Source: Octopus bimaculoides
Lineage: Eukaryota
Assembly: GCF_001194135.2 (NCBI RefSeq)
Contig: NC_068998.1
Location: forward strand, 50,092,364-50,156,363
Length of the DNA stretch: 64,000 nt
Direction of reading: 5' to 3'
Positions 8,568 through 64,000 of the stretch are shown in pieces (position 1 is the first letter of the stretch; the number at the start of each line of letters is the position of its first letter). A model generated the notes under the pieces. It did no database searches, had not been told where the DNA came from, and saw only the letters and a program-made list of their open reading frames with translations. A program made the position numbers and the translations under genes.

Positions 8568-11500
8568 ATGTATTTTTTCTGCTATTATAATTTATATATT
8601 ATTGATTGCTAAGTGCAGAGAAGTCACCATTATTGAAACAGTTATGGGTACCGAGTACAATTTAGCTGGCTGCAGAATGAAACAGTAGAAATACGAAATG
8701 AGGCATTTAGCAATAACAGCATTAGCAAGAGGCAGACTATAATCCGGAGTAACCATATAAATGCATTATACAATGAAATAAACAGGTTTAATAAACTTTT
8801 CGAAAGCAGAATCGAATTTACCCATAATGTACACAGTTAATAACACACAACATCGAACCTACTAAAAGACAGGGGCAAAGTCAAGATTCAAGGAGTGAAG
8901 TATTATAGGGCCAAATGTCACGTGATGATTACTATCATGAAGTGAAATAAGAATCCCTTCCACTGAAATTTAACCCCTCTTCATAAATATAACTACTTAA
9001 ATAGTTTATTGCAAATCACTTGAAAGGTAAAAGTTACCAAAGAACTTGCAAATGATTCCACACTACAATTTCCTCAATCACATACAAAAGCTCTAAGAAT
9101 TCGTCTGCTTCTTCTTCATATTGCACACACATTGGTGCCATGAAATGACTAACATTTATTTTCAAACAGGTGCTGCGGTATCAATGAGCCATTGTAATTT
9201 GATGGCTAATCAACGTTGCCCTGCATCTTATTATGGATATAACAATAAGGATGCATTTTGCAGGTTTGTATTTTCTCATACTCATATTATTACGATTAAT
9301 ATTTTCATTTATGTTGATTCTTATATATCTCACCCATAGAGATATGAACAGAAGTACTATTTACAACATTTAGCTTCCGTGTTCAACTCCATTAAAATCT
9401 GAAAATCTAAGTCAAGATTTCCACACAGAAATTCATAGTGTTTGAATATAAAAATAAAAACAAAATTTCATGGTTTTCGTTCTAAAATTAACAAAATATT
9501 ATTTCTTCGTATTTTACAGGCATTTTAATGAACCTCACTCATGTTATCGTTCAATTAGTAAGAAATGTACATCATACTTCAAAACAATAAACCACAATAT
9601 GTGTCCGGTGAGATATTTATACTATCCCCTTTTCTGAACCCGCAGGGTCTGTGAAGTTAAACTTTCCATTATGAGTGAGTTCTTATCGCTAACATATATT
9701 TCTTTAGATACTTCCGACGAAATACTGATGATACTTTTCCGTACTGTTTACCTTCCGTTACACCGGGTTCAAATTCCAACGATTCCAACTTCGAATGCAA
9801 TTCTTTTGACTTTGATAAAATATAATGTACCATAGAAGGGGTGATTTCAATTTTATCGACTAAATATCTCTGAAATTTCCAGACATTTCACCGCAATCAG
9901 AAACCATTATTTAATTTCGGGAGTGGCAATCTGACAGTCGCTACAGAGCCACTATTTGGTTCGTAGCTTCAAATTTCTATTCATTTGAGCTCTCAAAATT
10001 TGAATCATGCGTGTTCAAATCTCACTGAGATATTCTTACACAATGAAGTCCTTTTTCATATATTAGTTTCAAAACTGTAGCCCGGCACACCGCCGAATTG
10101 TTGGCTTGGACGTAAAATTATTCGGCTAACGTTCCATATGGAACCTGTCTACCTAAGTACAACAATTGTGGTTATGAACAATTTTGGGCGATTTGAAAAC
10201 TTCAAGCATGATTATGACCATGGAATAAGAATAAGGTAAAGGGATGCTGTCTCTATTATGGCCTTATTCATATTTATTCATATATTATCGCACACACATA
10301 CAATCAGCCATACAGAGTTTTGATTCGTTACACTTATAACGAGGCAGATGTGATAGGATCGACATTTAACTCGGTATGATACATTTGATTTGCAAATAAC
10401 GATAAATACTCCACAGGTGTCCGTTATCTAGAGTTGCTTTCATGGAAAAACAAAACAAAACGCAGCTCCGATAACGGATAGAGTGAATGACTGTTGAAGA
10501 TGTTACAAGAAGCACCGAAAATTTTATAATAATAAATAAGTAAATGAGTTTAAATCGAACAAATGAGAGTGTTATTTAATAATACGTTAAAACAGAATGA
10601 CTCTCCCCAGACACAATAAAATATACTTCAACACACGAATTCACATGCAGAATCTTGCAAACCAAATACAAAACCCAAATTCCCTAAGTTTTGTTTTCTG
10701 ACTAATACGTTTATATTATTTCAAAATATTTTTTTCAGCGAAGTAAATCAAGTTTCGTCACTAGTGGCATGAATCTCGTATTACCAGCATTACAAGTGAT
10801 ATCAGCATTGTATTACTCTGTTCCAAGTCTACGTTTGGAGGCCTATACAGTGACATACAAGATATTAATGAGCACTAACTAATCATTGAATATAACGTAA
10901 GTTATATACAGCCAATTTACACAATAATTCTAATTTCAAGCAGTGATAGGTGTCAGTAAGCGGATAGCGATGCTCTTCTAGAATGAAGTTATTTTAAGCC
11001 TGCGGCCCTTATTGCATTGTGAGCCTGCATTAAGGACGATATTTCCTATATTGCGGTACTTAAAACACGTAAAAGAAAGAAAGCGCTACCAGCACATCTT
11101 TTGTTCTGACACGCACTTCTCACCCATCGTCAAAATCTGCGTGAGCTGAATCTTCTTATCATTAGAAGATACACGTTTCACACAATCTCATACATACTGG
11201 ATTAATAAAAACAACTTACGTTTCGCATTCAGCTGTGCGCCTAATGTTAAATAGATTTTTATGAAAGCATCTAAATCGTGAGAAGAGGCAGAATTCTGGT
11301 ATAGAGTTAACAATGAATTCCTTAATTCTTAAATAGTCATGAATTTATATAGTCTTCTAAAGCTTTCTATTTTCTTTTACAGGTTATTTTTCAAACAATA
11401 TTTCTGGCTGCAGTTCTATTCATAATGTTATTTCGTAAATTGAATAAATTGAATAAATTGAACGTTACTATGAGAGCATATCCATATTTTCTTGTGTTTT

Positions 11501-11580
11501 TATTCAATAAACAAACAGTGTATGAAAGCAACATCCAAATTATGTATCTCTACGACTGTCATAGAATATATAGGCTCTAA
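8568..11580 (+). pseudogene. Gene B: small 6-Cys GPI-type family member, probably damaged
   Basis: Exon 2 9170-9263 (GAAVSMSHCNLMANQRCPASYYGYNNKDAFC) and exon 3 9520-9607 (RHFNEPHSCYRSISKKCTSYFKTINHNMCP) have AG/GT borders and family phases. Exon 5 starts at 11383 (VIFQTIFLAAVLFIMLFRK) but has no stop until 11578-11580. The homologous exon 1 (8568-8608) has one extra T and a CTAAGT donor. Exon 4 is uncertain; a candidate at 10739-10777 (RSKSSFVTSGMNL) has a weak donor. Confidence 0.7.
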
Positions 11581-12897
11581 TGGAGCGGGTTACGAAAAGT
11601 AGAGACGAAAACAACCCACCGTTGCACGCAAAGGCAAGCTTGTATACGTACAAGAACTGGAATGAGTCACCTTCTTTAATTTGCTTTTCTAATAAACAGA
11701 TGAACGTTTGAAGTCTAGTAAATCTCGTGTCATCTTACTCGGACTCGTCCAGGTGCAATCCAATCACTTCAAAAGAAGAAACAATGGAGAGGAATATATC
11801 GGGTGAATTCCAGGAAGCATAGAAGCTTTGAAGCATGTGGTGTCCCTACGGATACTGCTGCTGGTGGTTTATTCTATGATTTAGCATTTCTAAGCTTGAA
11901 AAGTTATTTCCTAATGTCATGGACGCTGTGTTGCATTTGATTTTGTAAGCATGTCTGCAAGTGACATATGGGAATCAAAAATGTTCCCAAGATTGTTGTT
12001 GGATAAAGTTGAGAGCATCGGCCAATTCACTTGCCAGATGTCGGAGCGTTAATGTATTGAAACCCAGGAATTAAGACGTTTAAAGTATGGTAGATGCACA
12101 AGGGTGGTAGTCGCTTGATTTCACATTTCATGGTTCCAGACTAGTGACAGAAATTCTGAGTGTGGACATAACATAATCATTTACAGCTTTAAATATATAG
12201 CTGGAGAGCCACTAAAAAGGTCTTACTGAGAGATGCGAGGAAACCTGCAGCATTCTTTACCATCTCAGAGATGTGGCGTATCCTACGCAGATCGCTGTTT
12301 ACAATGATACCGACGTGACGTTCACTAACAGACTTTTAAGATTGGTGTTATTGAGGGACTATGTAGCATCTGATTCTTTCCTCCACAGCGCATAATGAAA
12401 CCTTTGTCCACAGCTAACTAAAATTTTCAGTCGGTAATCCATTGCTACAGTCTGTCCAGGCTTGATTGCAGGCAAAATCGATAGTGAATAGCAACTGTTC
12501 TTTTTTATCAATTCTTGACACACTGTAGTAATACTCTATGATATTGTTTCTTCAATGGAGAATACACGTAATAAAATACCTTAGAATGTGTAACCCATGG
12601 AAATTTCACTTCAATATTCATGTAAAGTATCGGTTATTACGTTTGTTACTCGACGAATTTAGCCATAGAATACGCAATAAATACTTCTTAATGAGAAATA
12701 TATTAACATAGTTACATTAAGCACGACAGGCAAAATATAACTCTCGACAAATAATTTGTTATCATGACAATAAATAATGGATGTCAACACATTGAATTCT
12801 GGGTAAAACACATGTTACGTTATATTTATGTATACAAGATATAACATTGTCGATGTGTCGTATAGATTACCAGACGTGGTATTTGAGAGTCAACACC

Positions 12898-13610
12898 ATG
12901 AAAACATTATCTCTATTTATTTTTCTTCTGCTAGTTGGCAAGTATATATATACATTATTTCCTTACATCAACAACGATCATTGATTTTTCTATGAAGCGA
13001 TTTAGATTTAAGTATATATATATNNNNNNNNNNGTGAAAATTATTAATACAATTATAAGTATAGGGAAATGGAAAAAAGGCGTCTTTGCCAATGATCTTT
13101 AAATTAGACAGTAAATCGCCTAGACACATAAAACATTTTCAATTGTATGTTTTATTCCACGTGTTGAAACGAGGAAAGCAGGCAAACAGACATTCATAAA
13201 AATATAATTATCCACAATTGGTTCCGATTTCTGGATTAATTTCTGGATTAATTGCTAGGGTTAAAAAATGCCTTAACTTTTACAATAACAATATGCATTG
13301 TTCCCTTTCCATAACATAGATACAGACAGAAATTAGAATTTCCACATGATGCCGTTACATTTGTCAATTTATCAATATTGTGAATATGGAACTTATCAAT
13401 TTTTAGGCAGAGCAATCCCTGACATACAAGGGGATTGTGCAAAACTGGCAGGTATCACGTGCCCCAAGATTTATAAAGTATATAAAGCACATAAAGATGA
13501 CTGCGAGTAAGTATGATATTACTATCATTATAATATAATAATTGAAGATGCTAAATATAGACTTTTATAAACAGGTACTAAGCAAAATTTATACATGTGT
13601 ATGTATATAC

Positions 13611-13690: not shown

Positions 13691-14098
13691 ATGTATGTAT
13701 ACGCATAAAAACAGGTAGTTTGAATGGAAAATATATTAGTGATATTTATTAAAAATGACATTTGACAATAGGAATTACTAAGAGTTACGTGTTACATAGA
13801 CATGTAAGGAATATGTTAATAGCAAGTCCTCATACAGATGATTAAATAATGATTATCGCACATATGGTTGAAAATATTATGTTAACGAAGAAAATTGTAT
13901 GTTTTATAGCACTAATGTTAAGAACATTGAGAAATACTTTTTTAAATTCAAATCAGAAGTAATGCGTATTTAATAAATGTAAATAAATGTTTCGAAGGCT
14001 GCAATTTCATTTCAAAAGGCTTTTAATATACCTACATGTACCTACCTAGTAACATGCCAATATGCATACATACACACATACATGCAAACGTGTGTGTA

Positions 14099-14168
<70 letters not shown>

Positions 14169-14520
14169 CGTATGAATGCATGTATGTATGTATCTGAAGT
14201 TTTACTGATAAATGCCAACACAAGAAACTGTAACCACATGTGACCCACTGCATTTAACGTAGAACATTTTTGGGTGACGAACCCATGACAATTCCCACAG
14301 GAACAATTCGATGATTACATAGTTTATAGATTTCTAGTTAGACCTACATTAATGTTTAATTTCGTTATTTTCAATTTCAATGACCAATTGGTGTGTTATA
14401 TTTCTTGAAACACGTTATTTTCCAGGGTTGTAGGAACGTTTCTGAAATGCTTTTTTGCTGTAAATGAGTCACCTTGTTACCACATGTATAAACAAATGCA
14501 AAGCTGTCCTGTAAGTTGTC

Positions 14521-14568: not shown

Positions 14569-15939
14569 CGGAAGATAGAGTGTATTTTCTTTTATTCGAT
14601 TTCGCATTGATTTTAACCTGGTTCTTGATCTATATACTAATATATCTCAAAATTCTCGAGGAATCGGTGGTGAAGTTAAAAATAAATCTATTATGTAAGT
14701 GCAGACTACACCAGTTGAGTTCTTGTATTCAATATAGAACCAATACACAATAGGTTTGGAGAACTTTGCTGATTTTATGGCAGAATTTAAGTTAATATGT
14801 TACCTCACAATATCATTCAAATCGATGGACACGAGTCAGAACTGAAACTTGTTTGTAAAGACGCTACATGTTATATGTTCTGATTATTAATTCAAAATTG
14901 AAGCAAATATGCGAAATTTTCTACACACGTTTTATCACTTTATTGGTATTCGAAGTCATAGAAATGGTTGCGAATATTTATTCATGAACGAACAACTCTA
15001 TGGCATGTCCTAGTTGTTTGTTAAAAATAAAAGAAAGAATGTCAAAGTTTTCGCACTGAAAGAATGTCAAATTTTTCGCACTGGGCGTGCGTTTCCGTTC
15101 CAGACTTTATATAAATGATAAATGGTTGTGTAATCTACATATATGAAACGACGCTACAGTTAATGTCCGATATGTTTTATAATCTTCTTGACTTGTAGCA
15201 AAGATCGTAAATTAAATAAATATTTTAATAACATTTTAAAGCAAAATAACCGTATTAAGCATAATTCAACGATTTGTTGCTCAAATAAAACAGACTTTCA
15301 AGAAAATATGTATTTTTTTTTATAATTGCAAACTTACGCCGTGTTCTTCACAATCGAGTTTCAATGAGTTTCAATGATCTAAATTTCGTTTGTTAATCAA
15401 CTACAAAACTTCTTGTAAGAACTTATATGGGAAACGACATTCTCCCCTTCGATAATTAACTAATTCACAGATTACGTTCAGTTTTTCATAACGAGCATTA
15501 TGTGATGTAATTGTTATCTATATCATTGCGATACATTTGTGGAGATACATTAAATTCAAATTAATTGTGCTCTTTTAATTTCAAGATTTTCGTTCTGTGT
15601 TCACAGGTTACCGAGAAAAGCTCTTCTAATCAAGTTAAGGTACGTGACGTCTTTGTGACCGCGTCAGTTACAATATTATTTTATTATAATATAGACGATT
15701 TTGAAGACGGCGAGCTGGCAGAAACGTTAGCACATCGGGCGAAATACTTAGCGGTGTTTCGTCTGTCTTGCGTTCTGAGTTCAAATTCCTCCTAGTTTAT
15801 TTTACTGTTCATGCTTTCGGGTAAATTAAATACCGGTTGCGTACTGGTGTCGATCTAATTGTCACTGTCGCTCCTCAAAGATGTCGAACCTTGTTCCTGG
15901 AGTACAAAAGAATATATAGCATTTCATATCCATTATAAG

Positions 15940-15970
<31 letters not shown>

Positions 15971-17156
15971 TGTAGCCGTTATTACAAAATGCTATTTTGT
16001 CATTGTGTATCATAGATATACTTTTTTAAAAATTACTACTTGAAGATCTATTTGTATGAAAGTTTGAATGTTACGACTGTTATATATCCATTATTAACTG
16101 CAGCATTATTGTCATACCTCTGCAAAAATACTTGAGATAAAAACTAAGTGTTGAAGACGATTTTATCTTAATACATACGCCTTATACTTACCGATTGGTT
16201 GCTCAATATGCTGACTTAAAATTTGGCACAAGTCCAACAATGTTAGGATAAGACGAGTACATCGACCCCCAAGGGGATCTGGTACTTATCGTATCGATCT
16301 CTAAAAAGATTAATGGAAATGAAGGTCTCAATAGAATTCGAAGTCATAACTTAAAGACGGGCGAAAATATGCATTCGTCCCGGTATGCTAGCGAACTTGT
16401 CAGCTCACCGTCATGCATTTATTAATATCCTATGGGTATTAAATCAATATGGACGTCTATTTGCTTTGTGCTAAGGTTTGAAGTTGAACATAAGTTCATC
16501 ACCTGATAGTGAAGAAAGCTATCACAAAATTTGGCAAGTGGGCCAGCTGGCTTTATCTTTATGAAACAGAACAAGTTGCTTTTCTTCCGGCTTTTTACAA
16601 TCTCATTTCAAATTCCACTGCTGGATGCATTGCCTTTGATTATTTCAGATTCCATAAGTTAAGTAATCTTTGAACACAAGAGTCATGTAATCGCATTCCT
16701 CTCCCTTCAATATCACTTAGCTTTACCTTAAATAAGGGTAAATTCTTTTCTGTTAAACCATACCGAAGAATATGGAAAAAATTTCTCATGGCCACAAGGG
16801 CTACTGCTGAGAAGGAGGTTGCGAACAGAACTAGATTTCACCTGCCGAAAGTTCAATGTGGTATCGCTTTGCCCATTTGCATCACACTAACCATGTCTGC
16901 GATGCGAACATCGCTCCGGTTAGGCTTTCTCTAGACGCTTCGATTTCATCAAAAAATACTGCACTAGATTGTTTTGGCAAATATCCATTGTCGACACATG
17001 GATACAAGAATATAATCCCCAAGTGAGTGTAAAATATACATTGAAATATTTTCGATATACATTTTTAAAGTTTTTCTTTTCTTGTTTTCTTTGCAGATAA
17101 CCTTTGCCGCAGTGTCCCTTGACTTACTTGTGATTGTATTGCTAAAACATAACTAA
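12898..17156 (+). CDS. Gene C: 105-aa signal-peptide, 6-Cys, putative GPI-anchored protein
   Basis: Exons 12898-12937 (GC donor, G|GCAAGT), 13407-13506, 14426-14510, 15607-15639, 17097-17156 join in frame: [105 protein letters not shown]. Confidence 0.88.
15705..15900 (+). mobile_element. SINE-like dispersed repeat (second family)
   Basis: GGCGAGCTGGCAGAAACGTTAGCACATCGGGCGAAATACTTAGCGG...GAGTTCAAATTCC is the reverse complement of the 39181 family. Confidence 0.6.
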
Positions 17157-17560: not shown

Positions 17561-18740
17561 AGACATTGATTTAAAATTTATTTGCTATGAATATATAAAT
17601 TAATAGGCTTCTAACCTTTTTATTTTGAAGTTTCCAAACCACTAACTATAATATTTGTCATCAGTTTGCAAAACGTTGGTAAAATGCCGTTTTTTTTGTT
17701 GAAAATTTGAGTTTAAGACTTGTGTTTGGAAGAAAACCAAACCAAACGCGTGTGCATGCAAATATTAATAAAATGCCCAGTTTTAAACGAATTTGGCTCA
17801 CTACATCTGGCAATCAGACACTATTAAATATAATTAGAATGCACATTTGAAGTAATCACTAGTGTATGATAAGTAGGTCCAAATTTTGTGGTTTTCGGTC
17901 GTTTTGACTGTCTCCTAGCGTGTAGAAATCGCCAGTTATTGGTAATTTCTCTTGAATAATAAGTCGTCCATTGGCTTTGTATACCTGCCAGGCCAATAGT
18001 AGTGAAATGTGTAAAATATTTACTATGCTATATATATCTAAGTATATATACATATAGGTAGGCAGATGGATAGATGAATTTATTAAAAGAGAAATGGTTG
18101 AATGATTGATTGGTTGCTCCCTGCATAGAAAGGTATACTGTATCATTTTTGACATAGTATATTGCTCGTTAAATAAATGTTAAGATTTCTACTGGACAGA
18201 AATGATAAGAATATGGAACACACTGACACTTTGAGATTTGTCTCTCCCTTAAGAGCAAATGCTTTTCGATATGTGTTTATCTCTTAAGGCTAGTGACATC
18301 TGATATAATAATTTCATTTAAATAATTTCAGCTTCCATAAATTAATTAGCTGTATCAATGTTTATATGTGCTTTTGATATATATGTAATGCTTGTGCAAT
18401 TTTTCAGAATTTTATATTTGATATTTTCATTTGCTTCTCATCCTTAATGCAATTCATAAGTTCATCACAACGAATTCATATTTAAACCGCTATTATATCT
18501 TATACATAAATAGAAATAAATTTTAGATTCAATTTTGTCTTTGTGTGGATTTTAATTAAATTGTTGTCCACACCTGCGTTAAGTGAATGTTTGTATATTC
18601 GTAAACATTACAAACATTCCGAGTTATCTAATTGGTGAAAAATGAATAAACAACTAATATAAAAAAGAATATCAGACTAGTAAAGTTGTCCCTTCATATA
18701 CATGATGTGTTAGTTTTCACCAGAAAGTATTGCAGAATGT

Positions 18741-19100
18741 AGTTGGCACTCCGTCGCCTACGACGTCGAGGCTTCCCGTTGATCCGATCAACGGAACAGC
18801 CTGCTCGTGAAATTAACGTGCGAGTGGCTGAGCGCTCCACAAACACGTGTACCCTTAACGTAGTTCTCGGGGATATTCAGCGTGGCACAGTGTAACAGGG
18901 CTGACCTTTTGAATTACAAGCACAACAGAAACAGGAAGTATGAGTGAGAGAAAGTTGTGGTGAAAGAGTACAGCAGGGTTCGCCAACATCCCCTGCCGGA
19001 GCCTCGTGGAGCTTTAGGTATTTTCGCTCAATAAACACTCACAACGCCCGGTCTTGGAATCGAAACCACGATCCAATGACCTAACCACTGGGCCATTGCG
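18741..19100 (-). mobile_element. tRNA-derived SINE
   Basis: Minus strand begins CGCAATGGCCCAGTGGTTAGG...GGTTTCGATTCC (pol III A and B boxes), followed by a ~300 bp GC-richer body. Confidence 0.7.
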
Positions 19101-19164
19101 ATTGCACATGATTGCAGAATATCCCAGTTCAAATTTTGATCTTCTACAATTCTGTGAAATTTAT

Positions 19165-19490
19165 ATAATAATAATAATAAAAAGAAAAAGGAAAAGAAGG
19201 AGAAGAAGAAGAAGAAAAAGAAGAAGAAGAAGAAGAAGAAGAAGAAGAAGAAGAAGAAGAAGAAGAAGAAGAAGAAGAAGCAAAAAAAGAAGAATAAGAA
19301 AAAGAAGAAGAACAACAACAACGACAACAACAACAATAACAACTCCAAATTCACCATTAATTAACGAGCTCAAAGTACGCAGGGTTCTTGGCGCATGGCC
19401 AGTAAACAAGTTTCACGTTGGTGTTCTGTGAACAGCTGACACGTTGCATCATACCCAGCAACATATGCTGTGAGTTTTAATCACGATAAC

Positions 19491-19546
<56 letters not shown>

Positions 19547-19567
19547 GAAGAAGAAGAAGAAGAAGAA

Positions 19568-19598
<31 letters not shown>

Positions 19599-19695
19599 AA
19601 GAAAAAGAAGAAGAAGGAGGAGAAGAAAAAGAAAACAGCAACAACAACGACAACAACTCCAATATCACTATTAATTAACGAGCGCAAGTCTATGT
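19165..19695. repeat. Tandemly duplicated (AAT)n(AAG)n(AAC)n compound microsatellite
   Basis: Two units (19165-19385, 19488-19695), each ending AACTCCAA..CAC.ATTAATTAACGAGC. Confidence 0.9.
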
Positions 19696-19901
19696 CGTAT
19701 TAGCAGAACTATATCACCTTATATAACCATGACGTGACAAATATAGAGCTGACACGTCAAATAATTCAGTAGACTAATAACTAAATAAAAATGAAATCGC
19801 TGTATCCTTCCAGATGAAACATATTTGATTATTCGAGAAATACGATGTGTAGGTGACTTCTACAACATCAGATTTTGTGTTTCGGACGCAACACGATAAT
19901 A

Positions 19902-26646: not shown

Positions 26647-26674
26647 CATATGTTACATTGCTTTCGTATATAAG
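26647..26674 (+). promoter_or_regulatory. Conserved CANNTG-TTAC upstream motif plus TATA-like box (gene E)
   Basis: CATATGTTACATTGC then TATATAAG, 87 nt before the ATG. The motif recurs at 12809, 33316, 40797, 45742, 47054 and 52562, and in degenerate form at 8501, ~31517 and 60004. Confidence 0.6.
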
Positions 26675-47147: not shown

Positions 47148-47488
47148 ATGAATACTTCTGTGTTTATTTGTCTTCTCTTATTTGGTAAGTTGCTAAGCGT
47201 CGATGATTTTTTTTCCTTACATATTCACTTGTCAATAATTTTCCGTATATTTCTCTTATCACGTATGCGTATATGTACCTATGTATTTGCCTACACTTGA
47301 AAAATTACCAGGTAAATGTGAATTTATAGTCTTCGTATTTACATATTTAGCTATTTATCACTGTCCATCCTTTTGTTGCTATGTATCTCCCTGTGCGCTC
47401 GCGTATGTTATGTGCATGTATACATAGACCTATATATATATTTTATGTATGTGGATTTATTGGATGAATCTGTATTTGTGTGTATGTC

Positions 47489-51235: not shown

Positions 51236-51723
51236 GTTTTGTATTCTATACTCTTTCAAGCTGAACTCTCAGTCTGATTTCTTTGTTGCACGTGAAGTTA
51301 TATAACTAATGGAAATTTAAATAAAGAACATTCTACAATAATGTTCTGACGGCCTCATTTTATATTTATAATGGAAGTATTAGAAAAGTATGTCTGTAAA
51401 AGTGTCATAAATGTGGACAAAATTAAACGCCCGGGGGACATTTTTTATTTGTTCCACACTAACAAACTTTTAAGATCACCAGCATGGATAGAATATAATA
51501 TTTAAATTCATACTTGAGAAATGACGTTTTATGGCCAATCTTCAGTTTATAGGACTGGTGGTTTGAAACAGGTGTTAGAGATGTAAAAATACTAACGCAC
51601 ATGGTGCATAACTGCGCAGATACACACACGTACACACAAGCACCCATAAGTATGTGTGTATGTATATGCATATATATGTATGTGCTTGTGTGTTTAGATA
51701 CATACACGCACACACACACACAG

Positions 51724-51911: not shown

Positions 51912-52025
51912 TCATTATTATTATTATTGTTACTATTATTATCATCATTATTAGTATTATTGTTATTATTATTAGTATTACTATCATTAGTAGTAGTAGT
52001 AGTAGTAGCAGCAGCAGCAGCAGTG

Positions 52026-52078
<53 letters not shown>

Positions 52079-52095
52079 TGCAGTAGTATGATTAT
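51912..52095. repeat. (ATT)n(AGT)n(AGC)n compound microsatellite
   Basis: Seen directly. Confidence 0.95.
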
Positions 52096-52655
52096 TAAAT
52101 CTACCCATCTACGATGGAAGTATGAAATGCGGGAGGACAGTCGTAACAACTGTGTGCATTGAGAAATGTGTAAATAGACTTGAGAGAATACTGGGGATGT
52201 CTTAGAGAAATCACATTATTGTTGGTGGTACAACGTTGGATGGCAGCAGCATGCCATGAAATTGCGACTAATTGACATGTGATGAGGATTCACTATGGAA
52301 CTCAGTCTGTGTGAGTGTCAACATGCGTCCCTCCCTGTAGGATTTCCATCGGCACTTCTGAAAAAGTACAGCAGGCTGTTTCTTTTCTTCGATCTTGTCT
52401 CCTACTTCGTGATGTTTAATAAGTTTGGTGAGAAACAATTTCTTTATCATAAAATTATTCCCTTTGTTCTGTATGGTTATGAAATGACGTGTAGGAACAG
52501 TTAGAATACAATGTTTCACCTTGTTCCAACATACCATGATATTCAACATCCTGCGGTGCACCATGTGTTACATCGTTTTTAATTAAGGTAAAACACCTCT
52601 ATAACACTGTTATATCTTTATTCATATTCAAAGTAGCTGAATGGCAAAGACCGAA

Positions 52656-54019
52656 ATGAAACTTCCTGCATTTATTTTAGTTCTCTTCTTTGGTAAGTTG
52701 CTATGCGATCATCTTTTCTTTACATATATATTTGTCAATAACTTTCAGTACATCTCCATTATCAATCATTTGTATATGCACCTATATATTTGCCTATCCG
52801 TTACAATTAACATGTATATATAAATGTAATATTTTTTGTATATACGTATTTAACAATTTGTTACTAGCCATCACTTTGTTCTTACACAGACACACACATA
52901 TTTATATACACATATACACATGTGTGATTTGTAGGCATATATATATGTAGTATGTGCTCGTAATGCAGCTGTAGTTCATGAATTCCAAATGTTGAGTTGT
53001 GAGAAACCTCGTGTTAACGACTATTGTTGTTATGCATGATGTGGCCAGGAATCGTAGTGACAAGTTTTGTCTCGTTGGCATATGAACCAACATTTATTCG
53101 GTGTTGTATTATGCATAAAATGCATATTGAAATTCATTTTTGCTTGTTTCAAGCTCTATCGTGCCACCAGTCTAGTTACTGAGTGCGCCTTTAGACGTAG
53201 CATCGTTTGAAAATCATCAGACGAGGGATTTAATTACTATAAAATGTTTAAAAGTTACCCTCCATAAAGTAAAATTTATACTACGTAATGATGTTCATTT
53301 TCTAGGTTCCGTTCTCTCACAGGATTGCGATGATCTCGCAGTTAGGAATTGCGAATGGATATTTAACCTTTATACAGAGAGGAAAAACGATTGCAAGTAT
53401 GTAGTATTATTTTACTACATGTTATATTCATATAGTGTAAAGAAACTATTTTATTTGTATATGTATATAAGTGTGTGAGTATATATATATATATATATGT
53501 ATGTATGTAGGTATGTGAACGTCCTCTTAGGACCTCCCATTTAGTCCAGTCACACTGATATACCAGCCCCACGGCCCTTCATCGTCTTTCGTCCTCCTGG
53601 TATGGCATTCCCGCCTGGATCATGGCATTCTTGTCCCTAATGTCTGCTCCCTCCCATTATTGGAAAGTAGAAGAACCGAAGCCATAGGCACTTCTGCACT
53701 TGTATATCTATACTATATATAAAACGGAGGTGTGTGTGTAATCGCTTTTCACGTGAAAACGGCTTCACTATTTACTTCCATACTTGTGATACATAAATAA
53801 TTTGACCTCGGATAAATCTTAGGCTCTTCATTTGATTTTTTTATCTCTAATTAAAAATAAATAATATATAAAGCAATATTTATTTTTAATTAGAGATTAA
53901 AAAGATCAAATGAAGAGCCTAACATTTATCCGAGGTCAAATTATTTACGCATCACAAGTATGGAAGCATTAGGTGAAGTCGATTACACACACATCTCTGT
54001 TTTATATATAGTATAGATT

Positions 54020-54053: not shown

Positions 54054-56759
54054 CACACGCACACACACACACACTCTTCCATTTCATCTGATGTGTGATA
54101 CTCTGTGTGTATGCGTGCGCGTGCGTGTGTGCTTTCGTGCGTGCGTGAGGGGTTCCACAATCGCAATTTATTTCAATTACTCTTGTGAGGATATTCACGT
54201 AAATCATTTTTTTCATTTAAGCCACATTTTAATTTTCGTAAAAGTGTCCAAGTACCANNNNNNNNNNNNNNNNNNNNNNNNNNNNNNNNNNNNNNNNNNN
54301 NNNNNNNNNNNNNNNNNNNNNNNNNNNNNNNNNNNNNNNNNNNNNNNNNNNNNNNNNNNNNNNNNNNNNNNNNNNNNNNNNNNNNNNNNNNNNNNNNNNN
54401 NNNNNNNNNNNNNNNNNNNNNNNNNNNNNNNNNNNNNNNNNNNNNNNNNNNNNNNNNNNNNNNNNNNNNNNNNNNNNNNNNTATATATGGGAGAATATAC
54501 AAATAATAACAACAGACGAGGACAGGTGGTGTAAATAACAAAAGTATATATTAGTATGACGCTCGGGAATACGGAAAGTCTTTGACGTTTCGAGCTACGC
54601 TCTTCAACAGAAAGAATACGGAGACAAGGAGAAAAACACGGAGGAAAAAAATTGAATAGTGTTCAGTCAACGGTCAATCATAATAATGGCCGATCATAAC
54701 AATGGCTGACCGGAAGTTAGAAATTCTTATTTCAGGAGAGCTAAGAAAGGGGGATATATATATATATATTAAGTGCAACGTTGTATTTAATGAGAGCAAG
54801 CGCGCTTCTACAGGATATGTTTTTCTAAGATATAGAAATCCATTTGCTCAGGGGCTTAATATCAATCAATACTCAACATTATATCTTATTCAAATTAGCA
54901 CTGAAAACAAATGTAACTGATTCTTCCACCAGACGGTAGATATATATTTAATTATTAATGTTTTTACAACAAGATTCATATCCAGTCACATGGTTGCGAA
55001 GAAAAATCTCTCAGCATACATTCATACTTGTGATCAAATTTGTAGTTTCTAACAAACACTAGGAATAGGAAAAATAAAGTTAATCACACATGTTTTCTGA
55101 TATTTAAATATAATGATAAATTCGATTTGAACTTTTAATTTTCATCTCCTAAACTTCAGGATAAATTTGTATTTCAGCGCATACAGGAAATTTATGAGAT
55201 GCTTTCGTGGAGAAAGTCTATTCTGTTATACAATATACGAAAGCAGTCGTAATTGCAAGGTAAGATATTTGTTACTCTCATAACATTATGGGAGGCAATT
55301 ACATAAAAAAAAATGATATTAATAAACAATATTCCATACCGTAATTCATTCCATTTCATACACAAGGGAATTTATGAAAAAGGTTGAGATTTTGTTTTGC
55401 AATAGAAGCAATTAATAGTATTTCAACAAAAATAGAAATAGTTGGAAGTGGAAATTAAATAAATTATGCTATTTATTTGCGGCATGTACATTAGGTATTC
55501 GAAACATAACATCACAATCTAATGCAGGTGAGGTGTTATAGCAAAAACGTTTATGGCCCAATTTGGGTAACCCGCGTACAATTTAGTAAGAATTTATTTA
55601 CTAAGGGACATGAAATATTAGTACATTTTATTCATTCACTATTCATTATGCATTTCAGCCAATTGACGGCACGAGTGACCCACATGAGGTACGTTTATTT
55701 CATTGTAACTGAATTATTAATGAAATAATTTTACTGATTTACAATTGATATAAATTCCAATTATGGACATAATCTAGTTTTGCATATCTGTCGTCAGTAA
55801 CATCTTGAATTATACACAGAATATCGTTAGAATGCAACTATATTACATGTTTATAATTATTTTAATTAATATCATAATAGTATTAACAGTAGTATTAACA
55901 ATATGTAAAATAATACTTCAATATTATTACTATACATGAACTACGAATTTCGAATAACAATTCTCAATTCATTTTCATATTATCTGCATATATTTAAAAA
56001 TACATCATATTGTTGAAGTCAATATCGAAGATATTTTCCAGGGGACTGAACATTTAAGATTAACAAATGTGAAGAAAACAAACTTATATAACCTGGTCTT
56101 GAAATCAATATATCTCGGGCATTTTCGCAATTTTTTGGAGACCTTATAAATTTTCATGGAGAATCACCCAACTTATCTTTTTAGATTATATACAGAAAAT
56201 GTTTATATAAGTGAAATCACACTATTTTCGGTATTATTTAATTTTTTTTCACCTGTGGGATTTTCAATAAATATTTTTTTAAAAACTCGGATTTTTGCGT
56301 GGAATCAAGTACACTGACCTTCTAATATACTTCAAACTCTTTATATTTGTTTGGAAAAAAGGGGTAGGTGGGAAACCGGACTCCCTCCCCCGTATCCCGG
56401 TATCATAGAATTTTTTTTTTTTTATTCAATGTATTTCGGCGACCTCCTAATATGCTACAAAACCTATCTTTGATACGGAAAACGGGATGGGGTGAGATGG
56501 AAGCTGCGAATATTTCGCTCCCACTCTCATTCATATTTCCATCTTCACGATTTTCACTGGGAAAAGAAAATGGAAGTACACTGGCGCAAAAAATCCGATT
56601 TTTTTTTTCTTCTTAGTAACTATCTTGCGAGTGAAAGGATCAAATTTTACCCTATTTTCGATATGCGTGAATAACGTGAGTTTTCACTTCTCTTTACAGA
56701 TGAAACTTCAATCACTGTTCCTTCCTGCTGCTGTGGTTATATCGGTCATGCATGAATAA
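52656..56759 (+). CDS. Gene I: 99-aa signal-peptide, 6-Cys, putative GPI-anchored protein
   Basis: Exons 52656-52692, 53306-53396, 55178-55259, 55659-55688, 56700-56759: MKLPAFILVLFFGSVLSQDCDDLAVRNCEWIFNLYTERKNDCNAYRKFMRCFRGESLFCYTIYESSRNCKPIDGTSDPHEMKLQSLFLPAAVVISVMHE*. An in-frame upstream ATG at 52641 would add MAKTE. Confidence 0.92.
53706..54018. mobile_element. ~310 bp fold-back element with Helitron-like ends, in intron 2 of gene I
   Basis: The left arm ATCTATACTATATATAAAACGGAGGTGTGTGTGTAATCG... is the reverse complement of the right arm through to a ~13 nt loop near 53864-53876. Confidence 0.8.
54579..54615 (-). ncRNA. Second copy of the hammerhead-like motif
   Basis: Identical motif within a ~160 bp repeat (54482-54645) nearly identical to 5839-6000. 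Confidence 0.45.
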
Positions 56760-59700
56760 ATAAATCGTATTTTTGCAACAATAATGAATTAATTTTATAA
56801 TTTTGTAATTATGACACAACGTAATTTTTTTCTTCTTTTTTTGTTCTTCACTGAGAAAGTACAACTTACTAAATATTTCGATTTGGAAATTTAAAGAAAT
56901 GACAAATATTCCCTTCAAATGTTTGAACAGGATGACAATGTTTTGCTATAATCCAACATTCCATTGCATTTGAGACAGATGACGCCCTGAGTTGCTAAAG
57001 CAGTAATATAGTTGTAGCAAATAATCTGCAACATAACACAGATTTGCTTAAACATTTATGCATGTTCCTGAAGGTTACCAATACGTACGTCTTGCAGTTG
57101 TATATTTAAGAAACGAGGAATTATGTATAGTATTAATGTTATTTACATTTGACGGATATTTGTCCTCATTTTGTTTGTTGTTAATAGACAGAGAACGCCA
57201 CTGAAAAATACGAAAACTAAAAGAAGCAAGACATATGCTAGGACACAATAACCTCCTAAGCGGACTGAGTGCAGATATGAATAGCATATGGGATTGGTAT
57301 TAAAGAAAAATAGGAAAATATTAGATTTGTATAGGGATGAAGTGTGAAAATGATCTGGAAAAAATTGCATGCGTATTGTGTCATACATCGCACTATATCC
57401 TGACACACTTTCTTTCTATTTTATTTTCGCTATTAACCGTCCTCGTTACTCACCACGTATTTATGAAGAGGCCACGCACTATACGATGAAAAACATCTAG
57501 ATTTGCTCGTGGTCACTGAATTCTTAATCAAAATGCGACGATGATTTATTAATTCAACAATCAAACATCCACAAAATATTCATACTAAGAGACAGACAGA
57601 CGGACATAACGACCATTGTTGTAAGATGGGAAATATGCCCATCTTCGATGGGGAATTAAGGGATAATATTGCAAATCTAAACACTCTAAATTCATTAATT
57701 ATACAGGAGTGAAATCCAGAGTTATTCATCGACACCGGAATTTTAAGCATAGAAAGCAAAGGTGATTTATCAATACAAAACTCAAAATCCACTAAATAAT
57801 CACATCATTGCACATGTTTCCGCTAAAAGCCTACCTGATTATCTCCTTGATAATATTGAAAAACAACGTGACCATTGGTTCATCCATTTGATCATGAAGA
57901 GAGAAGACAGATGGACAGATGGACAGATAGACAGACGGAAATAATATCCATTAATAGTAAGATTTCATACGAAACATATATGTATAACAATTAAGATTTA
58001 TTTTGGCAATAAAATCATTTAATACTATTTCAGCAACAACAGAAAGCGCTGGATACCAAAGTGAACAATGGCCTGTGTTATTTATAAGCGTCATATAAAT
58101 CTCGGATGCATTGTTACAAATCTAACATCAAAATTCAATACAAGCATTGCACAAATAGCAAAACACAAGCAAGCTGTCACACTATACGTTTTAGCAGGAC
58201 ATGCAGGAGTTGCTAAAATAAATTCTTAAACATCCCACGCATAAATGTTTGCATGCTGTTTATATATGGAAATATAGAATGCACGTAAGCAGCATATACT
58301 ATGGTGCCAAGCCATAAATTTCTTCAATACTGCAAAATATACTTCTAATCTCCATTGTTAATACACACCTCAGATATTTCAAATGTTGCAAAAGGTTCCA
58401 TGATTATTTTGGTCATGGTTTGAAACGTTTTCTGTGGCTTATACTTTAAATACGACCACGTTACGGATAAGGTACATTTATTCTCTGTCTTGTATTGAGA
58501 GACACGTGTTGTAATTACTTCATTTACCTCGATGGTTTTGTTTTCGAAAGTAGCTGTCATTTTATTTAGTATAAATATAGTTTGTCTTAGAAATCTATAT
58601 TATACTCCTTATGTCCTGTATTGAGTAACGAATAATTTCCAAGATAACATTGCAACTGGTTTAGTAAGAATGTTATTGTCATTTAGTCTCAGGAAACATC
58701 GTCTCCAGGTCGCTATTCGTCACACTATCACTGTCCTTACATTTTCGAACAATGGATTTTAGCATGCCCACTCAGCGCAAATCGATATCTGTGTACTGCG
58801 AGTTCTGGTTTATTTCTCTTCGGCTTGAAGTGGCGCTGCAAATCTCTTGTTCGAAATACATAGTTTTCTTTCAAATATAACAAAAAATTAGCAGTGTCGC
58901 CTCTAGCAGAACAATTATTCCCAAAATCTCGAAACACTGATATCGTTTTGTGCTGTGTGGTGATGCTAAACTACCCCATCGTTCTTTCCTGTCCCCTGTC
59001 TGTCTTTTTTCCACTGAGATTCTTTTGTTTCTTCTCCCTTCTCATCACTCCTTTTGTTTCTTTCCCTCATTCTCTATTTTGTCTCCCTTCCAATCTGCCT
59101 CTTTGCTCACACGTGATTACTGGCCATTTCTATCATTTCTGTCTCTCCTAGACACGCCGTCCACATAGATTGACGTCATTTCTCTCACCCCCTACATAAT
59201 TTCTCTTCTACTATTTTCTTCTCTTATTTATTCTACATCCTTTCAGAACTTCTCCCTAGCGTTCCTAAACGTTTATCTTCGTCGATTTTTGACTCATTAT
59301 GTCCAATCTGTATTGTTTGTATCTTCGAAGCTCTTACTCACCATGAATTTTATATTTTTTAAAATTTGTGCATGCTGCTGTCTTCTGAAGTTTTCCTATC
59401 ATCTCGTTGAAAGGTAGAAAAACAGAGTAATAAAAAGTCGACAAATGAAGAGAAGTACGACTTCCTTTTTTATTTTGTGCCGTACTTCTTTCTGGTTGAG
59501 TGCTTGCTTGCTCTCTGGTTTATTTATTTTCCAACGTTGTTGATATCCTGTTGTTATTGTGTTTTTTTTTTATATTTTGTCCTGTACTTATCTCTCGTCC
59601 GGTTATGCGTTTTTAATTTATTGGTGATGTCCTGTACTTAATCTTAATGTTTTATTTGTACATATTTAAAAGTAAATGCCCAAGGTTTCTCAGATCTATA

Positions 59701-60086: not shown

Positions 60087-63000
60087 ATGAAAATTTCTGC
60101 ATTTATTTTTGTTCTCTATTTTGGTATGTTGCTATACTTTGATTATCTTTCTATGATTATTTAATTTAATGGTGCATTCAATGTACTTTGTTGTAAGAAT
60201 TGTTCTCCAGCGCATGACCAGTTCTCTTGCTGCATCTATTCGGAATTTATTGGCCCAGGGATAGAATAAACATTGAAATCACTAAATCATGCATCATCCC
60301 TACAGTTTTCCAACCCCCTTCGTTAGTGTTTCATATTTCTGTATCATATTATGCACTCATCTTTAATTCCACTATTTCATAGGACTCAGATTTCGAAACA
60401 TTGGGTCTCATTTTTTGCCTGGTTGACAATTACAACCTCTAAGCTTCCAGTCGAAATCCTTATACCATATTAAATAGGGAAGTCAGACTACAGCTTAAAT
60501 TTGTCAGTCACTTAGTTTCTGCTCATACTATTTCGCTGCTCTGGCAAACCCACATTTCTGTTATCATCCAATGATATATATAACAATATTATCGTGTCGT
60601 CTTTTGTACTTATACTTTGCCAAATTAGTGTATTCTGTTGCAGCATAGCTAACTGTGTTTTCGTTTCAAATGTTCTACATAATGATTGACCAATTCTAGA
60701 TTCCGCCTGGAACAGCGTTACATTTTTACTCTTCATAGAAAAACCCGTTTCGGACACAACACAATAACTGTCCCTACAGCTTCCTTAAACGAAACATTAT
60801 CCTATCTTATTTTCATTCAATTCTTTTTTATTCATTAAAACAAAAATATCATATTTTATCAATTTTCATTGTTTTTATGTTATTTTATTCATTTATTTCT
60901 GCTACTGTTATATTCATTCTTATATTTTATCTATTTATTATTTTCTGTTTTGTATCTTATTTGTTATTTTATTTCATTTTTTATCTAAGTTATTATTTCA
61001 TTATTTATTTTATTCTTTTTTTTTTTGTTATTTTATTACCGGGCGAAATGCTTAACGGTATTTGATCTGTCTTAACTTTCTCAGTATAAATTCCGCCGAA
61101 GTCGACGTTGCCTTTCATTCAGTACCAGTTGCATACTGATGCCGATCTAATCAACTGGCTCTCTCCCCGCAAATTTCTTCCCCAGATTACGAAAGTTATA
61201 TTTAATTTATTATATTTAACATTATTTAATTTTTATTATATTTGATTTAATTTAATCTTTTACGGCAAAATATACCGATACAATATGTAGTAGGCTAACA
61301 AGAGAAAGAGAGAGAGAGAGAGAGAATTATGGAGAGGGTGAAAGTTTCACACCACTGAAGACAATTCCAATTTAGACCCAGTGTTGGTGTCATCATCATA
61401 TATGTGCAGATTTAGTTTCGATGTGGAAGAAAATATTGTATTTCATGAACCCATTCATAATCTCATTTGAATAGAATATTTGATGTTTTAAATCATGAAA
61501 GTAATAATATTGTAAATATTGATTTCGTAGGGGTAGCCTTCTCCGACCATTGGAAGTGGTGTGAGGAAATGGGAAGGTCTCGTTGTCCAGATGGATATTT
61601 AGCTTCTAGAGGAAGTGACGTACGCTGTGAGTAAGTATCATCATACCTCTAAATATTCAATTACTTCACGTGTATAAAATTCATTTTCTCACAAACACAA
61701 TCTCATTTAATATATATGCAGCTACAGAGACATATATACACGTTTTAATACGAAGGTCTATAAACGAGGTGGTCCCGAAACGAAACAGGAATGTTGCAAT
61801 GTTATTTTATTATCTTAGTTTTACATATTTGCAACCTTATCACCTTTCAGGCATTCCCACCTTCAAAGCAATGCATCTGTACAGATGTGTTTTGCAGTGT
61901 TCGAAGCAGTGCTTGAACTCTTGCAAAATAATTCGATTTAACGCATCCTCCGGTTTTTCTTCACCTTTTCCATATCTGAAAATTCGGTAGCTCCAGCTTT
62001 CATCACCAGTGATGACCTTCGAAAAAAGAACCGGTTGAATTTCGAAACTGTGTACTAGAATCAAATCTCTCCTTCAAAATTTCCGATCAGTTTTATTAAG
62101 GTTCCGGCAGGAATGGAGTTGGGTGCATCCAGTAGACTGCATTTCCACGTTATCTGCAGGTCGGACGTTATTAGTTCTATTACATTTTGGTCCGAGAAGA
62201 TCGTCGTTGTCATCATATTATGGATGTGTACCGTGTGATTTGTGAAGCGGAGATCCAGGAAAAGTTTACTCTCTGTCAGGTGGAGCAGTATTTTCTCCAT
62301 AAAGTGCCTGTTTGTAAGGTGAAGCCGTAACTCTCGCACTGACATGGAGAAATTGACCTCAGAACATTCCATATTATTGATTGAAAAGTCTCTTAGAAAT
62401 ATGTGAAGGCTGTCACATATGTTGGTTTACATTTCTTTCATCTTTTTCAAACTCACTTCGAAAGAGTTCTCGTGATTTGGTACATTTGGTGAGTGATATT
62501 TTGTATATATTACTATTTTAATGGTAATATATTACAGCAGGTGAAATATATATGATGTCAATAGTGGCTACTTGCCTCATACATTTAGAGGCCTCAGAAG
62601 TGATTTCAGTGAATATATTGCTGATTGTAGTGGTCTTCTGTCCTGGGGATGGTTTCTCAGATCCAATGTATGATGAAGTCTATTTAGCTGTCTTCCAATC
62701 GTCCGTGCTATTACCGTCGCTGCCTGCATTGCATCTGCATATTCTTTCATTTTAGAAGCAGTGCGTGTGGCAAACATATATTTCCAGTTATAGATGTATG
62801 CCAGGCTGCGAGCATGTATTGCTAGAAACATTCCTGTCATGTTATCACCGAATCTACGTTCTCTCATCCTGCTACTTTACCTTTCTCAGTTCTGCTTCGC
62901 TGATTCACTAGATGGGTTGTCAGACCCGACAAACGACATTACCTTCACAATACTACCTACCACTTTACACTCATCTCTCCACTCACCACTTCTAATTCTG

Positions 63001-64000
63001 TTTCTCTGAAGCTGCTGGTCAGTCACATCCTCACTTTCCCTACACTGCCTCTCCTATTTCTTCTTGCTTTTCTTCTGATGCAACATTGTCCTCCAAACCT
63101 CAACGCCTTATGCCTCCATCCGAATGCATTCTACACTTAAATTTTTGTAATTATGATCTGAGAGTTTAGATGCTAGTCTCTCCACGAAGAAGAGGGAGGA
63201 ACGATTTACGATAATGTTTATATACATGCACTACTAATTGTATAGTCCTCAATGTTTGCACGCGCTATCTGGAAACATTGCAATTACATATTTTTTCAAA
63301 AATCGATGTTAAAGGTTACTTAATATTAATAGTGTGTAATATGTTCTCCAAAACCTGTTATAACTAGTATAAGGAAGTGTAGATACAAAAGCGATATTCA
63401 CAAACCAGTCAACACTGTTGGACACGACGGAAATGGGTGTCGCGCTAATTTTCTTCTTGCACACAAGGTAGTTATTTTATGAAATCTGAAAGCAGGAATA
63501 CCAAATTCTCTTCTTATTATTTTCTAAACATAACATATATAATTGTCAAATAAAAGTATATAAAATTATTAGATGGATGCAGTTGACGGTGATTGCATCC
63601 ATAACCCTTCCGTTCATTTTATTGCTGATACTCTACTCCCTCATCGTCACGACTGACCTATCACAGTTCTACATCCTCCACCATCTCTGATTACCTACAT
63701 GTATTGACAAACCCAACAACGACAAATTCACAATACTATCCATTACATCCCTCTCATGTCATGACTAACCATTTCTAATTCTGTTTCTCTCAATCCCCTG
63801 GTTACTCACCTCCTCGCTCTTCCTACACAGCCTCTCCTTTCTCTTCTAGCATATCCTCTACTGCAACACTCTCCAAAAATTTTGAATGTTCGCCTATTAA
63901 AGAAATGTCATTTCGTTTCATTTCAGGGGTTTCTTCAAATTTATGAAATGCTTTCAATGGTATGACAGAAAATGTGTCGAGTACTTTGGATACCACTCTC
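60087..64000 (+). CDS. Gene J (3'-partial): family member running off the window
   Basis: Exons 60087-60123, 61531-61630, 63927->64000: MKISAFIFVLYFGVAFSDHWKWCEEMGRSRCPDGYLASRGSDVRCEGFFKFMKCFQWYDRKCVEYFGYHS... Confidence 0.88.
61035..61185 (+). mobile_element. SINE-like dispersed repeat (second family)
   Basis: CCGGGCGAAATGCTTAACGG...AAATTCCGCCGAAGTCGACGTTGCCTTTCAT matches the family. Confidence 0.6.
61745..62400 (-). mobile_element. Mariner transposase remnant in intron 2 of gene J
   Basis: Minus strand LFSKVITGDESWSY (first catalytic Asp motif) is fused by deletion to a C-terminal EFKHCFEHCKTHLYRCIALK; a TIR-like sequence lies near 61750-61790. Confidence 0.75.
62905..63100. repeat. Degenerate repeat, second copy at ~63685-63875
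   Basis: Shared ACAATACTA...TTCTAATTCTGTTTCTCT...CCTACAC.GCCTCTCC; possibly an old LINE fragment. Confidence 0.5.

Follow-up and report, generated by a model that had tools for sequence, protein, structure and literature searches.

In a stretch of 64,000 nucleotides of the Octopus bimaculoides genome (CM046618.1, ~50,092,364-50,156,363, + strand; assembly GCA_001194135.2, chromosome of 55.56 Mb), hereafter the window, we saw nine gene bodies (G1-G9), all on the + strand and all with one common exon-phase layout, which are part of a cluster extending over ~0.4 Mb. This cluster probably encodes an Octopus-restricted family of small secretory-pathway proteins whose C-terminal tail is exchanged for a glycosylphosphatidylinositol (GPI) anchor, whose copies have multiplied in tandem and whose mature domain is diversifying. 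The family is real, undescribed and lineage-restricted; its general design is familiar, but as a protein family it is new.

RESULTS

Gene bodies and exon layout

Repeat finding returned an exon-1 block in seven copies (family D19) and an exon-5 block in seven copies (family D18); candidates for exons 2 and 3 were picked by regular-expression scans for cysteine spacing. Exon-level nucleotide profiles, built from few seed copies and run over the window, recovered the remaining copies on the + strand only. The seed copies had E-values of 1e-16 to 1e-28; the non-seed copies ranged from 2e-10 (non-seed exon 2 examples: 2e-10 and 5e-6) to weak, with the weakest matches at exon 2 of G9 (0.016) and at its truncated exon 3 (0.066). 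A tblastn search of the window with family proteins gave the nine + strand bodies and no other match.

The modelled exons have lengths of 34-40 nt (exon 1), 91-100 nt (exon 2), 82-88 nt (exon 3), 27-33 nt (exon 4) and 60 nt (exon 5), with two exceptions: exon 3 of G5 has 73 nt, as it uses an alternative acceptor, and exon 5 of G3 has 48 nt. Splicing gives open frames of 96-105 aa for six genes (G2, G3, G4, G6, G7 and G8); their exon 3 is 82-85 nt long, the intron phases are 1-2-0-0 throughout, and 23 of their 24 introns are GT-AG, the remaining one, intron 1 of G2, being GC-AG (GCAAGT). All nine gene bodies can be read as open frames. A first-pass annotation, made from the letters of the sequence, had described nine co-oriented bodies of five exons each, six of them with uninterrupted frames. 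The exon profiles and tblastn bore out the nine bodies and their common strand, and the six frames were reproduced; exon sizes and phases were recovered as well, the five-exon layout failing for G1, which has four exons.

The splice pattern could be checked on G9 (102 aa), which runs past the end of the window on the + strand: its exons lie at 60087-60123, 61531-61630 and 63927-64008, followed by window-equivalent positions 64605-64634 and 65064-65123. The protein given by this five-exon model (37, 100, 82, 30 and 60 nt) is identical to RefSeq XP_052830549.1 (LOC128249947), an independent check of the splice pattern.

The intact copies are distributed along the + strand from G2 to G8. G2 (105 aa) has exons at 12898-12937, 13407-13506, 14426-14510, 15607-15639 and 17097-17156; its intron 1, the one with the GC donor, contains a gap (13024-13033). 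G3 (96 aa) has exons at 19902-19935, 20549-20645, 21103-21187, 21865-21891 and 23894-23941, with gap 22443-23399 within intron 4. The exons of G4 (99 aa) are at 26734-26770, 27144-27234, 28047-28128, 29309-29338 and 30188-30247, again with a gap within intron 4 (29588-29696). G6 (99 aa; 40885-40921, 41413-41503, 42484-42565, 43180-43209, 44322-44381) is free of gaps. In G7 (98 aa; 47148-47184, 47896-47986, 48930-49011, 49308-49334, 50030-50089) and G8 (99 aa; 52656-52692, 53306-53396, 55178-55259, 55659-55688, 56700-56759) intron 2 holds the gap, at 48367-48376 and 54258-54481, respectively.

The window has 13 runs of N, and the earlier list of gaps was incomplete, with 36703-37109, 48367-48376 and 54258-54481 missing from it. 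No exon is in contact with a gap, the smallest exon-gap distance being 87 nt. All gaps inside the range of the array are intronic or intergenic, so that gap lengths have no bearing on the reading frames. The flanks of the intronic gaps are collinear with paralogues on either side (G4/G5/G6; G7/G8), which supports order and orientation of the sequence pieces, without proving continuity.

Protein architecture, predicted fold and tail

The predicted proteins begin with Met-(Lys/Asn), a hydrophobic core of 10-12 residues and small residues before the first Cys; on inspection this has the form of a cleavable signal peptide, which exon 1 and the start of exon 2 would encode. Exons 2 and 3 would supply a mature domain of ~50 residues with three predicted short helices and three disulfides, exon 4 a short Ser/Asn/Gly-rich segment, and exon 5 a charged spacer and a hydrophobic C-terminus of 10-18 residues, with the polyadenylation signal overlapping the stop codon.

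The cysteine spacing of the window copies, C-x7-C-x13-C-x8-C-x7/8-C-x9, confirmed the spacing of the six-cysteine motif proposed earlier, from which G4 and G5 depart, as they are without the third and sixth cysteines. An alignment of 24 members reads C-x7-C-x13/14-C-x8-C-x7/8-C-x9/11-C; four of the cysteines are invariant, the other two occur in at least 90% of members, and a few aromatic positions are otherwise conserved. The loss of domain cysteines 3 and 6 together in both G4 and G5 argues for a Cys3-Cys6 disulfide in other members, and suggests that these two copies form a four-cysteine subtype with one disulfide pair lost. G4 carries an extra Cys in exon 4.

The two AlphaFold2 models, at modest confidence (predicted local distance difference test scores of 58.6 and 65.5), were entirely helical, the helices spanning approximately residues 20-37, 43-55 and 57-66. 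Foldseek comparison of both models with the PDB gave no match at E <1, a weak negative because the models carry signal peptide and tail and have low confidence.

Of 25 members put through a rule script, 21 have a hydrophobic run of 10-18 residues that stops 0-6 residues short of the C-terminus; three of the remaining four were not properly scored by it. Such a stretch with no cytoplasmic domain behind it, as expected of a GPI precursor, is present in G3-G9 and most paralogues; the tail of G2 is interrupted by Asp and was not scored, and the tail of G1 does not conform. In most tails an SS[SN]-type cluster and a charged spacer of 7-9 residues precede the hydrophobic run; by rule, an omega-site cluster (SSS, SSN, GTS, NSS) and a polar spacer (e.g. 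REKMKFR) could be recognized. The tails thus fit the rules for GPI-attachment signals, and putative GPI anchoring is likely. As a whole, the claim of a tandem family with signal peptide, six-cysteine domain, Ser-rich spacer and hydrophobic tail is supported.

Relatives of the family

A HMMER scan of 1.84 billion representative proteins, with a profile built from G6, G2 and G4, produced 21 matches: 18 O. bimaculoides RefSeq proteins, one O. vulgaris hypothetical protein and two apparent artefacts. The latter, a scallop 'Ankyrin-1' and a 1467-aa repeat protein (long profile matches), were rejected on their sequences as artefacts of composition or repeats. A word-indexed protein search returned nothing for the six window proteins and, for the 24 members, six Octopus proteins only; the search with the 24 members added a nineteenth O. 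bimaculoides member (label P0016). Altogether the family profile matches 19 Octopus proteins of 77-130 aa and a fused O. vulgaris model of 302 aa (E from 7e-19 to 9e-4). Significant profile match, length, cysteine framework and exon layout place the window copies in the Octopus LOC1282498xx/499xx family. All true relatives among the representative proteins are from Octopus, in agreement with the proposed lineage specificity.

Searches for a known family were negative. In Pfam, the six window proteins (E up to 10) and the 24 members (E up to 1) gave only noise; the family profile had no relevant match among PDB sequences, and no description of the family was found in the literature searched. 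No link to the family could be made for obimac0019980, a cephalopod-specific marker from an optic-lobe atlas. CHCH (twin Cx9C) proteins were rejected on three grounds: spacing of Cx7C, presence of a signal peptide and a Pfam score of 14.9 bits against a cut-off of 27.2. Ly6/uPAR membership was likewise discarded, the Octopus proteins having six cysteines, a predicted helical fold and no UPAR_LY6 match. The opinion that this is not a named family therefore holds against Pfam, PDB sequence and fold searches alike; the sequence search proposed with it assigned no well-described family and matched Octopus uncharacterized proteins only.

Annotation of the cluster

About 19 paralogues are present in RefSeq under the name 'uncharacterized protein' (LOC1282498xx/499xx), spread over roughly 0.4 Mb; the annotated loci are LOC128249821-839, -868 and -931 to -947, with LOC128250805 on another chromosome. 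Members at 50.047, 50.074 and 50.080 Mb are on the - strand, those at 50.152 (G9), 50.168, 50.184, 50.190 and 50.196 Mb on the + strand, and further members are at 49.78 and 49.97 Mb; the window occupies the 50.092-50.152 Mb stretch between annotated members.

The annotation was inspected for only part of the window, that downstream of 50087 in the chromosome record (window 50087 is position 1 of the annotated stretch CM046618.1:50142450-50167486; 100% identity over 13.7 kb). In this part G9 is the sole called gene, and G8 is without a gene call. An exact look-up of the G2, G3, G4, G6, G7 and G8 proteins showed them to be absent from a collection of 15 billion proteins, and G9 is the sole retrieved family protein that maps to the window. 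The family is thus known to databases, yet most window copies appear to have been missed by annotation. The first-pass annotation had called the array 'hidden', which is only partly right, because ~19 loci including G9 are in RefSeq; the absence of a call for G8 and of the six proteins from the collection agrees with it.

A scan of the flanks, also proposed there, did reveal more copies, both annotated and uncalled. The uncalled ones are downstream of G9 and beside LOC128249941, with exon 2 and exon 3 matches at 18804-18929 and 19777-19869 of one locus (L001) and at 17735-17887 and 19010-19144 of another (L002). The cluster may be put at roughly 30 or more copies.

Octopus vulgaris and divergence of the copies

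A locus of 109 kb in O. vulgaris (OX597831.1:18069714-18178888) holds several family copies, so the family existed before the two species separated. Over 89 kb of this locus, the gene model CAI9735849.1 fuses exons of several tandem copies into one protein of 302 aa. The G1-like unit occurs twice in this locus, ~57.7 kb apart and with near-identical scores, and the G1 locus is collinear with both O. vulgaris copies at 79-85% identity. Exon 2 of G1 is 96.8% identical to its O. vulgaris counterpart, compared with 81% for introns (Fisher p 1e-5); the terminal exon is ~95% identical, with stretches of 100%, and its frame is open. Orthologues of G2-G9 were not found in the 109-kb locus, except for the exon-1 region of G2.

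Within G4/G5/G6 and within G7/G8 entire genes can be aligned, introns included. For the pairs G4/G6 and G7/G8, exons 2 and 3 are 52-54% identical, less than the aligned non-coding sequence (65.7%; Fisher p 4e-4 and 3e-3), and exons 1 and 5 are ~80% identical (75-85% for the tail exon). In G4/G6 the mature domain has a non-synonymous divergence (dN) of 0.85 and a synonymous divergence (dS) of 0.66, and the signal peptide a dN/dS of 0.07. In G4/G5 the mature domain has a dN/dS of 0.43, with exons 2 and 3 at 79.8% identity versus 63.4% for non-coding sequence. An accelerated rate of change of the mature domain between subgroups is therefore graded only suggestive, because samples are small, dS is saturated and a sliding-window control is weaker. 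Some copies are under constraint (G4/G5; G1 in comparison with O. vulgaris).

Divergent copies and relics

G1, G5 and G9 had been taken for broken copies; they are open via four exons, via an acceptor at 37907 and via exons past the end of the window, respectively. G1 (+ strand; 8041-8077, 9170-9263, 9520-9607, 10739-10882) is a divergent four-exon member of 120 aa with six cysteines. Its first exon, earlier put at 8568, is better placed at 8041-8077, where there is a GT donor, phase 1 and a frame preserved in O. vulgaris; the candidate at 8568 was rejected, since its donor is not GT and a 1-nt indel is present in O. vulgaris. In the terminal exon, 10739-10882, exon-4-like and exon-5-like parts are joined. 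As a possible end of G1, the exon-5-like piece at 11383 was also considered and discarded, given the absence of the usual stop and a 2-nt indel relative to O. vulgaris.

The tail of G1 has ~21 hydrophobic residues followed by a conserved polar end of 16 aa with a YKIL motif. It is likely that this tail resembles a transmembrane segment with a short cytoplasmic end more than a GPI signal; G1 would then be one likely transmembrane member in an otherwise probably GPI-anchored family, so that anchoring may not follow a single mode in all members.

Four blocks in or near G1 (8104-8219, 8294-8411, 8621-8680 in intron 1, and 10593-10728) are 93-96% identical to O. vulgaris against a background of ~81% and have no obvious frame; regulatory elements or exons that are not translated may account for them.

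G5 (+ strand; 33401-33437, 36428-36518, 37907-37979, 38596-38622, 39489-39548) is a four-cysteine variant of 95 aa without domain cysteines 3 and 6, as in G4. Its homologous exon 3 acceptor has changed from CAG to CAA, and an in-frame acceptor is available 9 nt further downstream (exon from 37907); the intron-3 donor, GTCAGA, is weak. G5 spans three gaps and is for this reason the weakest gap case; the locus is collinear with G4 across all three. Intron 1 of G5 has ~2.6 kb extra in comparison with G4 (33543-36170), two gaps included, and within it a weak exon-1-like open reading frame is seen at 34966-35020 (55 nt, phase 1; nhmmer E 0.3).

Several isolated exons are scattered on the + strand. 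An orphan exon 1 at 31606-31642 keeps ATG, GT donor and upstream motif, but the next exon 1 is reached without any exons 2-5 in between; either G5 uses this orphan as an alternative first exon, or it is a relic. At 45815-45864 is an exon-1 relic, with the homologous ATG now ATA and the upstream motif an exact match; at 51248-51365 is an exon-5 relic, with the acceptor now AAG and an early stop in frame. Exon-5-like pieces are at 4063-4122 and 11383-11442. The first of them is in a 1.4-kb contig between two gaps (3797-5184), which is 97.5% identical, exon-5-like piece included, to 11117-12473 downstream of G1; this contig may have arisen by recent duplication, or may be allelic and misplaced.

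Upstream motif and polyadenylation signal

In nine of the 11 exon-1 copies, both orphan copies included, the motif CATATGTTACAT is located 82-94 nt 5' of the ATG (+ strand, at 12809, 26647 (26647-26658), 31517, 33316, 40797, 45742, 47054, 52562 and 60005); G1 and G3 have no clear copy. The motif contains an E-box and an initiator-like TTACAT. At the other end of the genes, AATAAA overlaps the stop codon in five of seven genes checked, G4-G8, in the form TAAATAAA or TGAATAAA (30245-30252, 39546-39553, 44379-44386, 50087-50094 and 56757-56764), so that the 3' untranslated regions of these genes would be only ~20 nt long. In G2 and G3 the first such polyadenylation signal is ~100 nt past the stop.

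Other features of the window

The window is AT-rich (31-36% G+C) and has many microsatellites. Long microsatellite or low-complexity tracts, of the types (TATC)n, (GT)n, (AT)n, (AAG/AAT)n, (GA)n and (TAG/CAG)n, are at 1-350, 2450-2640, 14080-14170, 19100-19700, 41935-42090 and 51925-52100; they are a source of spurious long open reading frames and Cys-Val 'proteins' in frame and regular-expression scans. Open reading frames of at least 90 aa across the window were microsatellite and gap artefacts only, and ARAGORN and Rfam gave no match across the window. A part of G2 intron 4 (15645-17041) matches the O. vulgaris OX597831.1 locus at ~28168-30524 in reverse, with 78-82% identity, and is probably a shared interspersed repeat.

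DISCUSSION

The pathway that we propose would start with entry of the precursor into the endoplasmic reticulum and formation of the disulfides. GPI transamidase would cut at a small residue in the exon-4 segment, the exon-5 tail would be replaced by a GPI anchor, and the helical domain would be exposed on the outer face of the plasma membrane, with shedding possible. The gene family would have grown by tandem duplication, after which the mature domain would have diversified fast on an unchanged cysteine scaffold and the targeting signals (signal-peptide and tail exons) would have stayed conserved. Fast change of a mature domain together with conserved targeting signals is usual for binding or recognition modules; the pattern of evolution seen here points to a binding or recognition surface.

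Several observations weigh against this account. G8 is uncalled, the six proteins are absent from the collection and only G9 among the retrieved proteins maps to the window; for the eight other copies this could mean low or no expression. The divergence tests comprise ~52 codons per pair, with dS saturated, and in the sliding-window control exons 2 and 3 were equalled in divergence by 16% of non-coding windows. Confidence of the structure models is low, and the disulfide pairing is one that we infer. The GPI assignment was made by rules applied by hand, and for the tail of G1 a transmembrane segment followed by a short cytoplasmic end is the closer likeness.

One could suppose that no GPI exchange takes place and that the C-terminal hydrophobic segment itself anchors the products as single-pass membrane proteins. 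G1, with its ~21 hydrophobic residues and conserved 16-residue polar end containing YKIL, is of this kind, and some paralogues have few extra residues beyond the hydrophobic run. In G2-G9, however, the run has only 10-15 residues, too short for a bilayer, ends 0-4 residues from the C-terminus and is not followed by basic stop-transfer residues, which is the classic shape of a GPI signal; for the family in general we consider single-pass anchoring unlikely. Toxin and antimicrobial families, too, usually combine a conserved signal peptide and a mature region that is hypervariable around fixed cysteines, so the genes might code for precursors of disulfide-rich peptides that are secreted, such as toxins, antimicrobial peptides or pheromones, with the tail as a removed propeptide. 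In Pfam, big defensin, thionin and myticin are touched weakly and below threshold, but these matches are noise (E of 0.01-0.8, one member each); there is no conserved dibasic processing site, and a conserved hydrophobic tail exon (75-85% identity in G4/G6 and G7/G8) is without precedent as a simple propeptide. A secreted peptide family is thus quite improbable.

The eight window copies that have no gene call or database protein might also be silent or decaying duplicates of expressed neighbours. Besides the annotation record (G8 uncalled, six proteins absent, G9 alone among retrieved proteins mapping here), the relic exons at 31606, 45815, 51248 and 11383 and the damaged acceptor and weak donor of G5 speak for such decay. 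It is hard to reconcile with nine frames kept open despite 55-75% protein divergence, with consensus splice sites at 24 of 24 introns of the six intact genes, with the G4/G5 dN/dS of 0.43 and exons more conserved than introns, and with conservation of G1 exons across species and of the promoter-proximal motif; silence or decay of the eight copies therefore seems very unlikely. A different question is whether the domain is a very distant relative of the RGM N-terminal domain (PF06535). This lead was pursued because RGM_N is disulfide-bonded and helical, and RGM proteins are GPI-anchored, features that the Octopus family would have in common with them; the C-x8-C-x7-C spacing is also common to both, two of 24 members touch RGM_N at E ~0.1 (best Pfam E 0.11), and hhalign against RGMB alone aligns four cysteines. 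The RGMA, RGMB and RGMC sequences were checked against PDB chains before profile-profile comparison; against the alignment so verified, hhalign gave a probability of 0.4% (E 0.17) for the family, and a PDB search with the family profile, at E up to 10, did not return any RGM chain. The lead was rejected, distant kinship with RGM_N being in our estimate extremely improbable.

Given that an Octopus-restricted, probably GPI-anchored family remains our preferred reading, some implications can be considered. The 60-kb stretch with eight apparently intact copies seems to be without gene models; family counts based on annotation are therefore too low. Cephalopod biology has often been tied to lineage-specific gene families, and few small secreted or surface families have been described there. 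The chemotactile and self-recognition behaviour of the animal is unusual; if expressed and GPI-anchored, the proteins would be candidates for recognition or modulator molecules at its cell surfaces. One could speculate further, as a long shot, that octopus-invented, diversifying, GPI-anchored three-helix proteins serve as a cell-surface code or as receptor modulators. A code, if true, might work in self-recognition by skin and suckers, or in neuronal identity. Modulators, if true, might have a Lynx/Ly6-like role on nicotinic-type receptors, the class from which octopus chemotactile receptors derive; a new fold would then be doing the job given to Ly6 proteins by other animals.

Comparison with known systems

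Resemblance to CHCH proteins is confined to two cysteine pairs about two helical turns apart on adjacent helices, and to a weak Pfam touch (E 0.031); CHCH proteins have Cx9C, no signal peptide and a location in the mitochondrial intermembrane space, whereas the Octopus proteins have Cx7C and secretory signals. RGM_N (PDB 4UHY, 4UHZ, 4UI1) is likewise a small helical, disulfide-bonded domain of GPI-anchored proteins with C-x8-C-x7-C spacing. However, RGM proteins are large, multi-domain and present across animals, in contrast to single-domain proteins seen only in Octopus, and homology has no statistical support.

GPI-anchored plant lipid-transfer proteins, fungal CFEM proteins, insect odorant-binding proteins and Aplysia attractin are small helical proteins with three or four disulfides that form expanded families; some are GPI-anchored, and variants minus one cysteine pair are known among them (odorant-binding 'C-minus'). 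Their cysteine frameworks and lineages are different, with no similarity in Pfam or PDB searches, and the comparison is one of general form only. The loss of one cysteine pair has a counterpart in G4 and G5.

The closest analogue in general design is the Ly6/uPAR family (CD59, Lynx1). Its members have 8-10 cysteines and a beta-sheet three-finger fold, unlike the six cysteines and predicted helices of the Octopus family. Both have a precursor of ~100 aa in which a single small disulfide-rich domain stands between a signal peptide and a GPI signal, the latter putative in Octopus. In both, small exons match the parts of the protein and the genes are in tandem clusters; the mature domain of Ly6/uPAR proteins is fast-evolving, and that of the Octopus family shows signs of the same.

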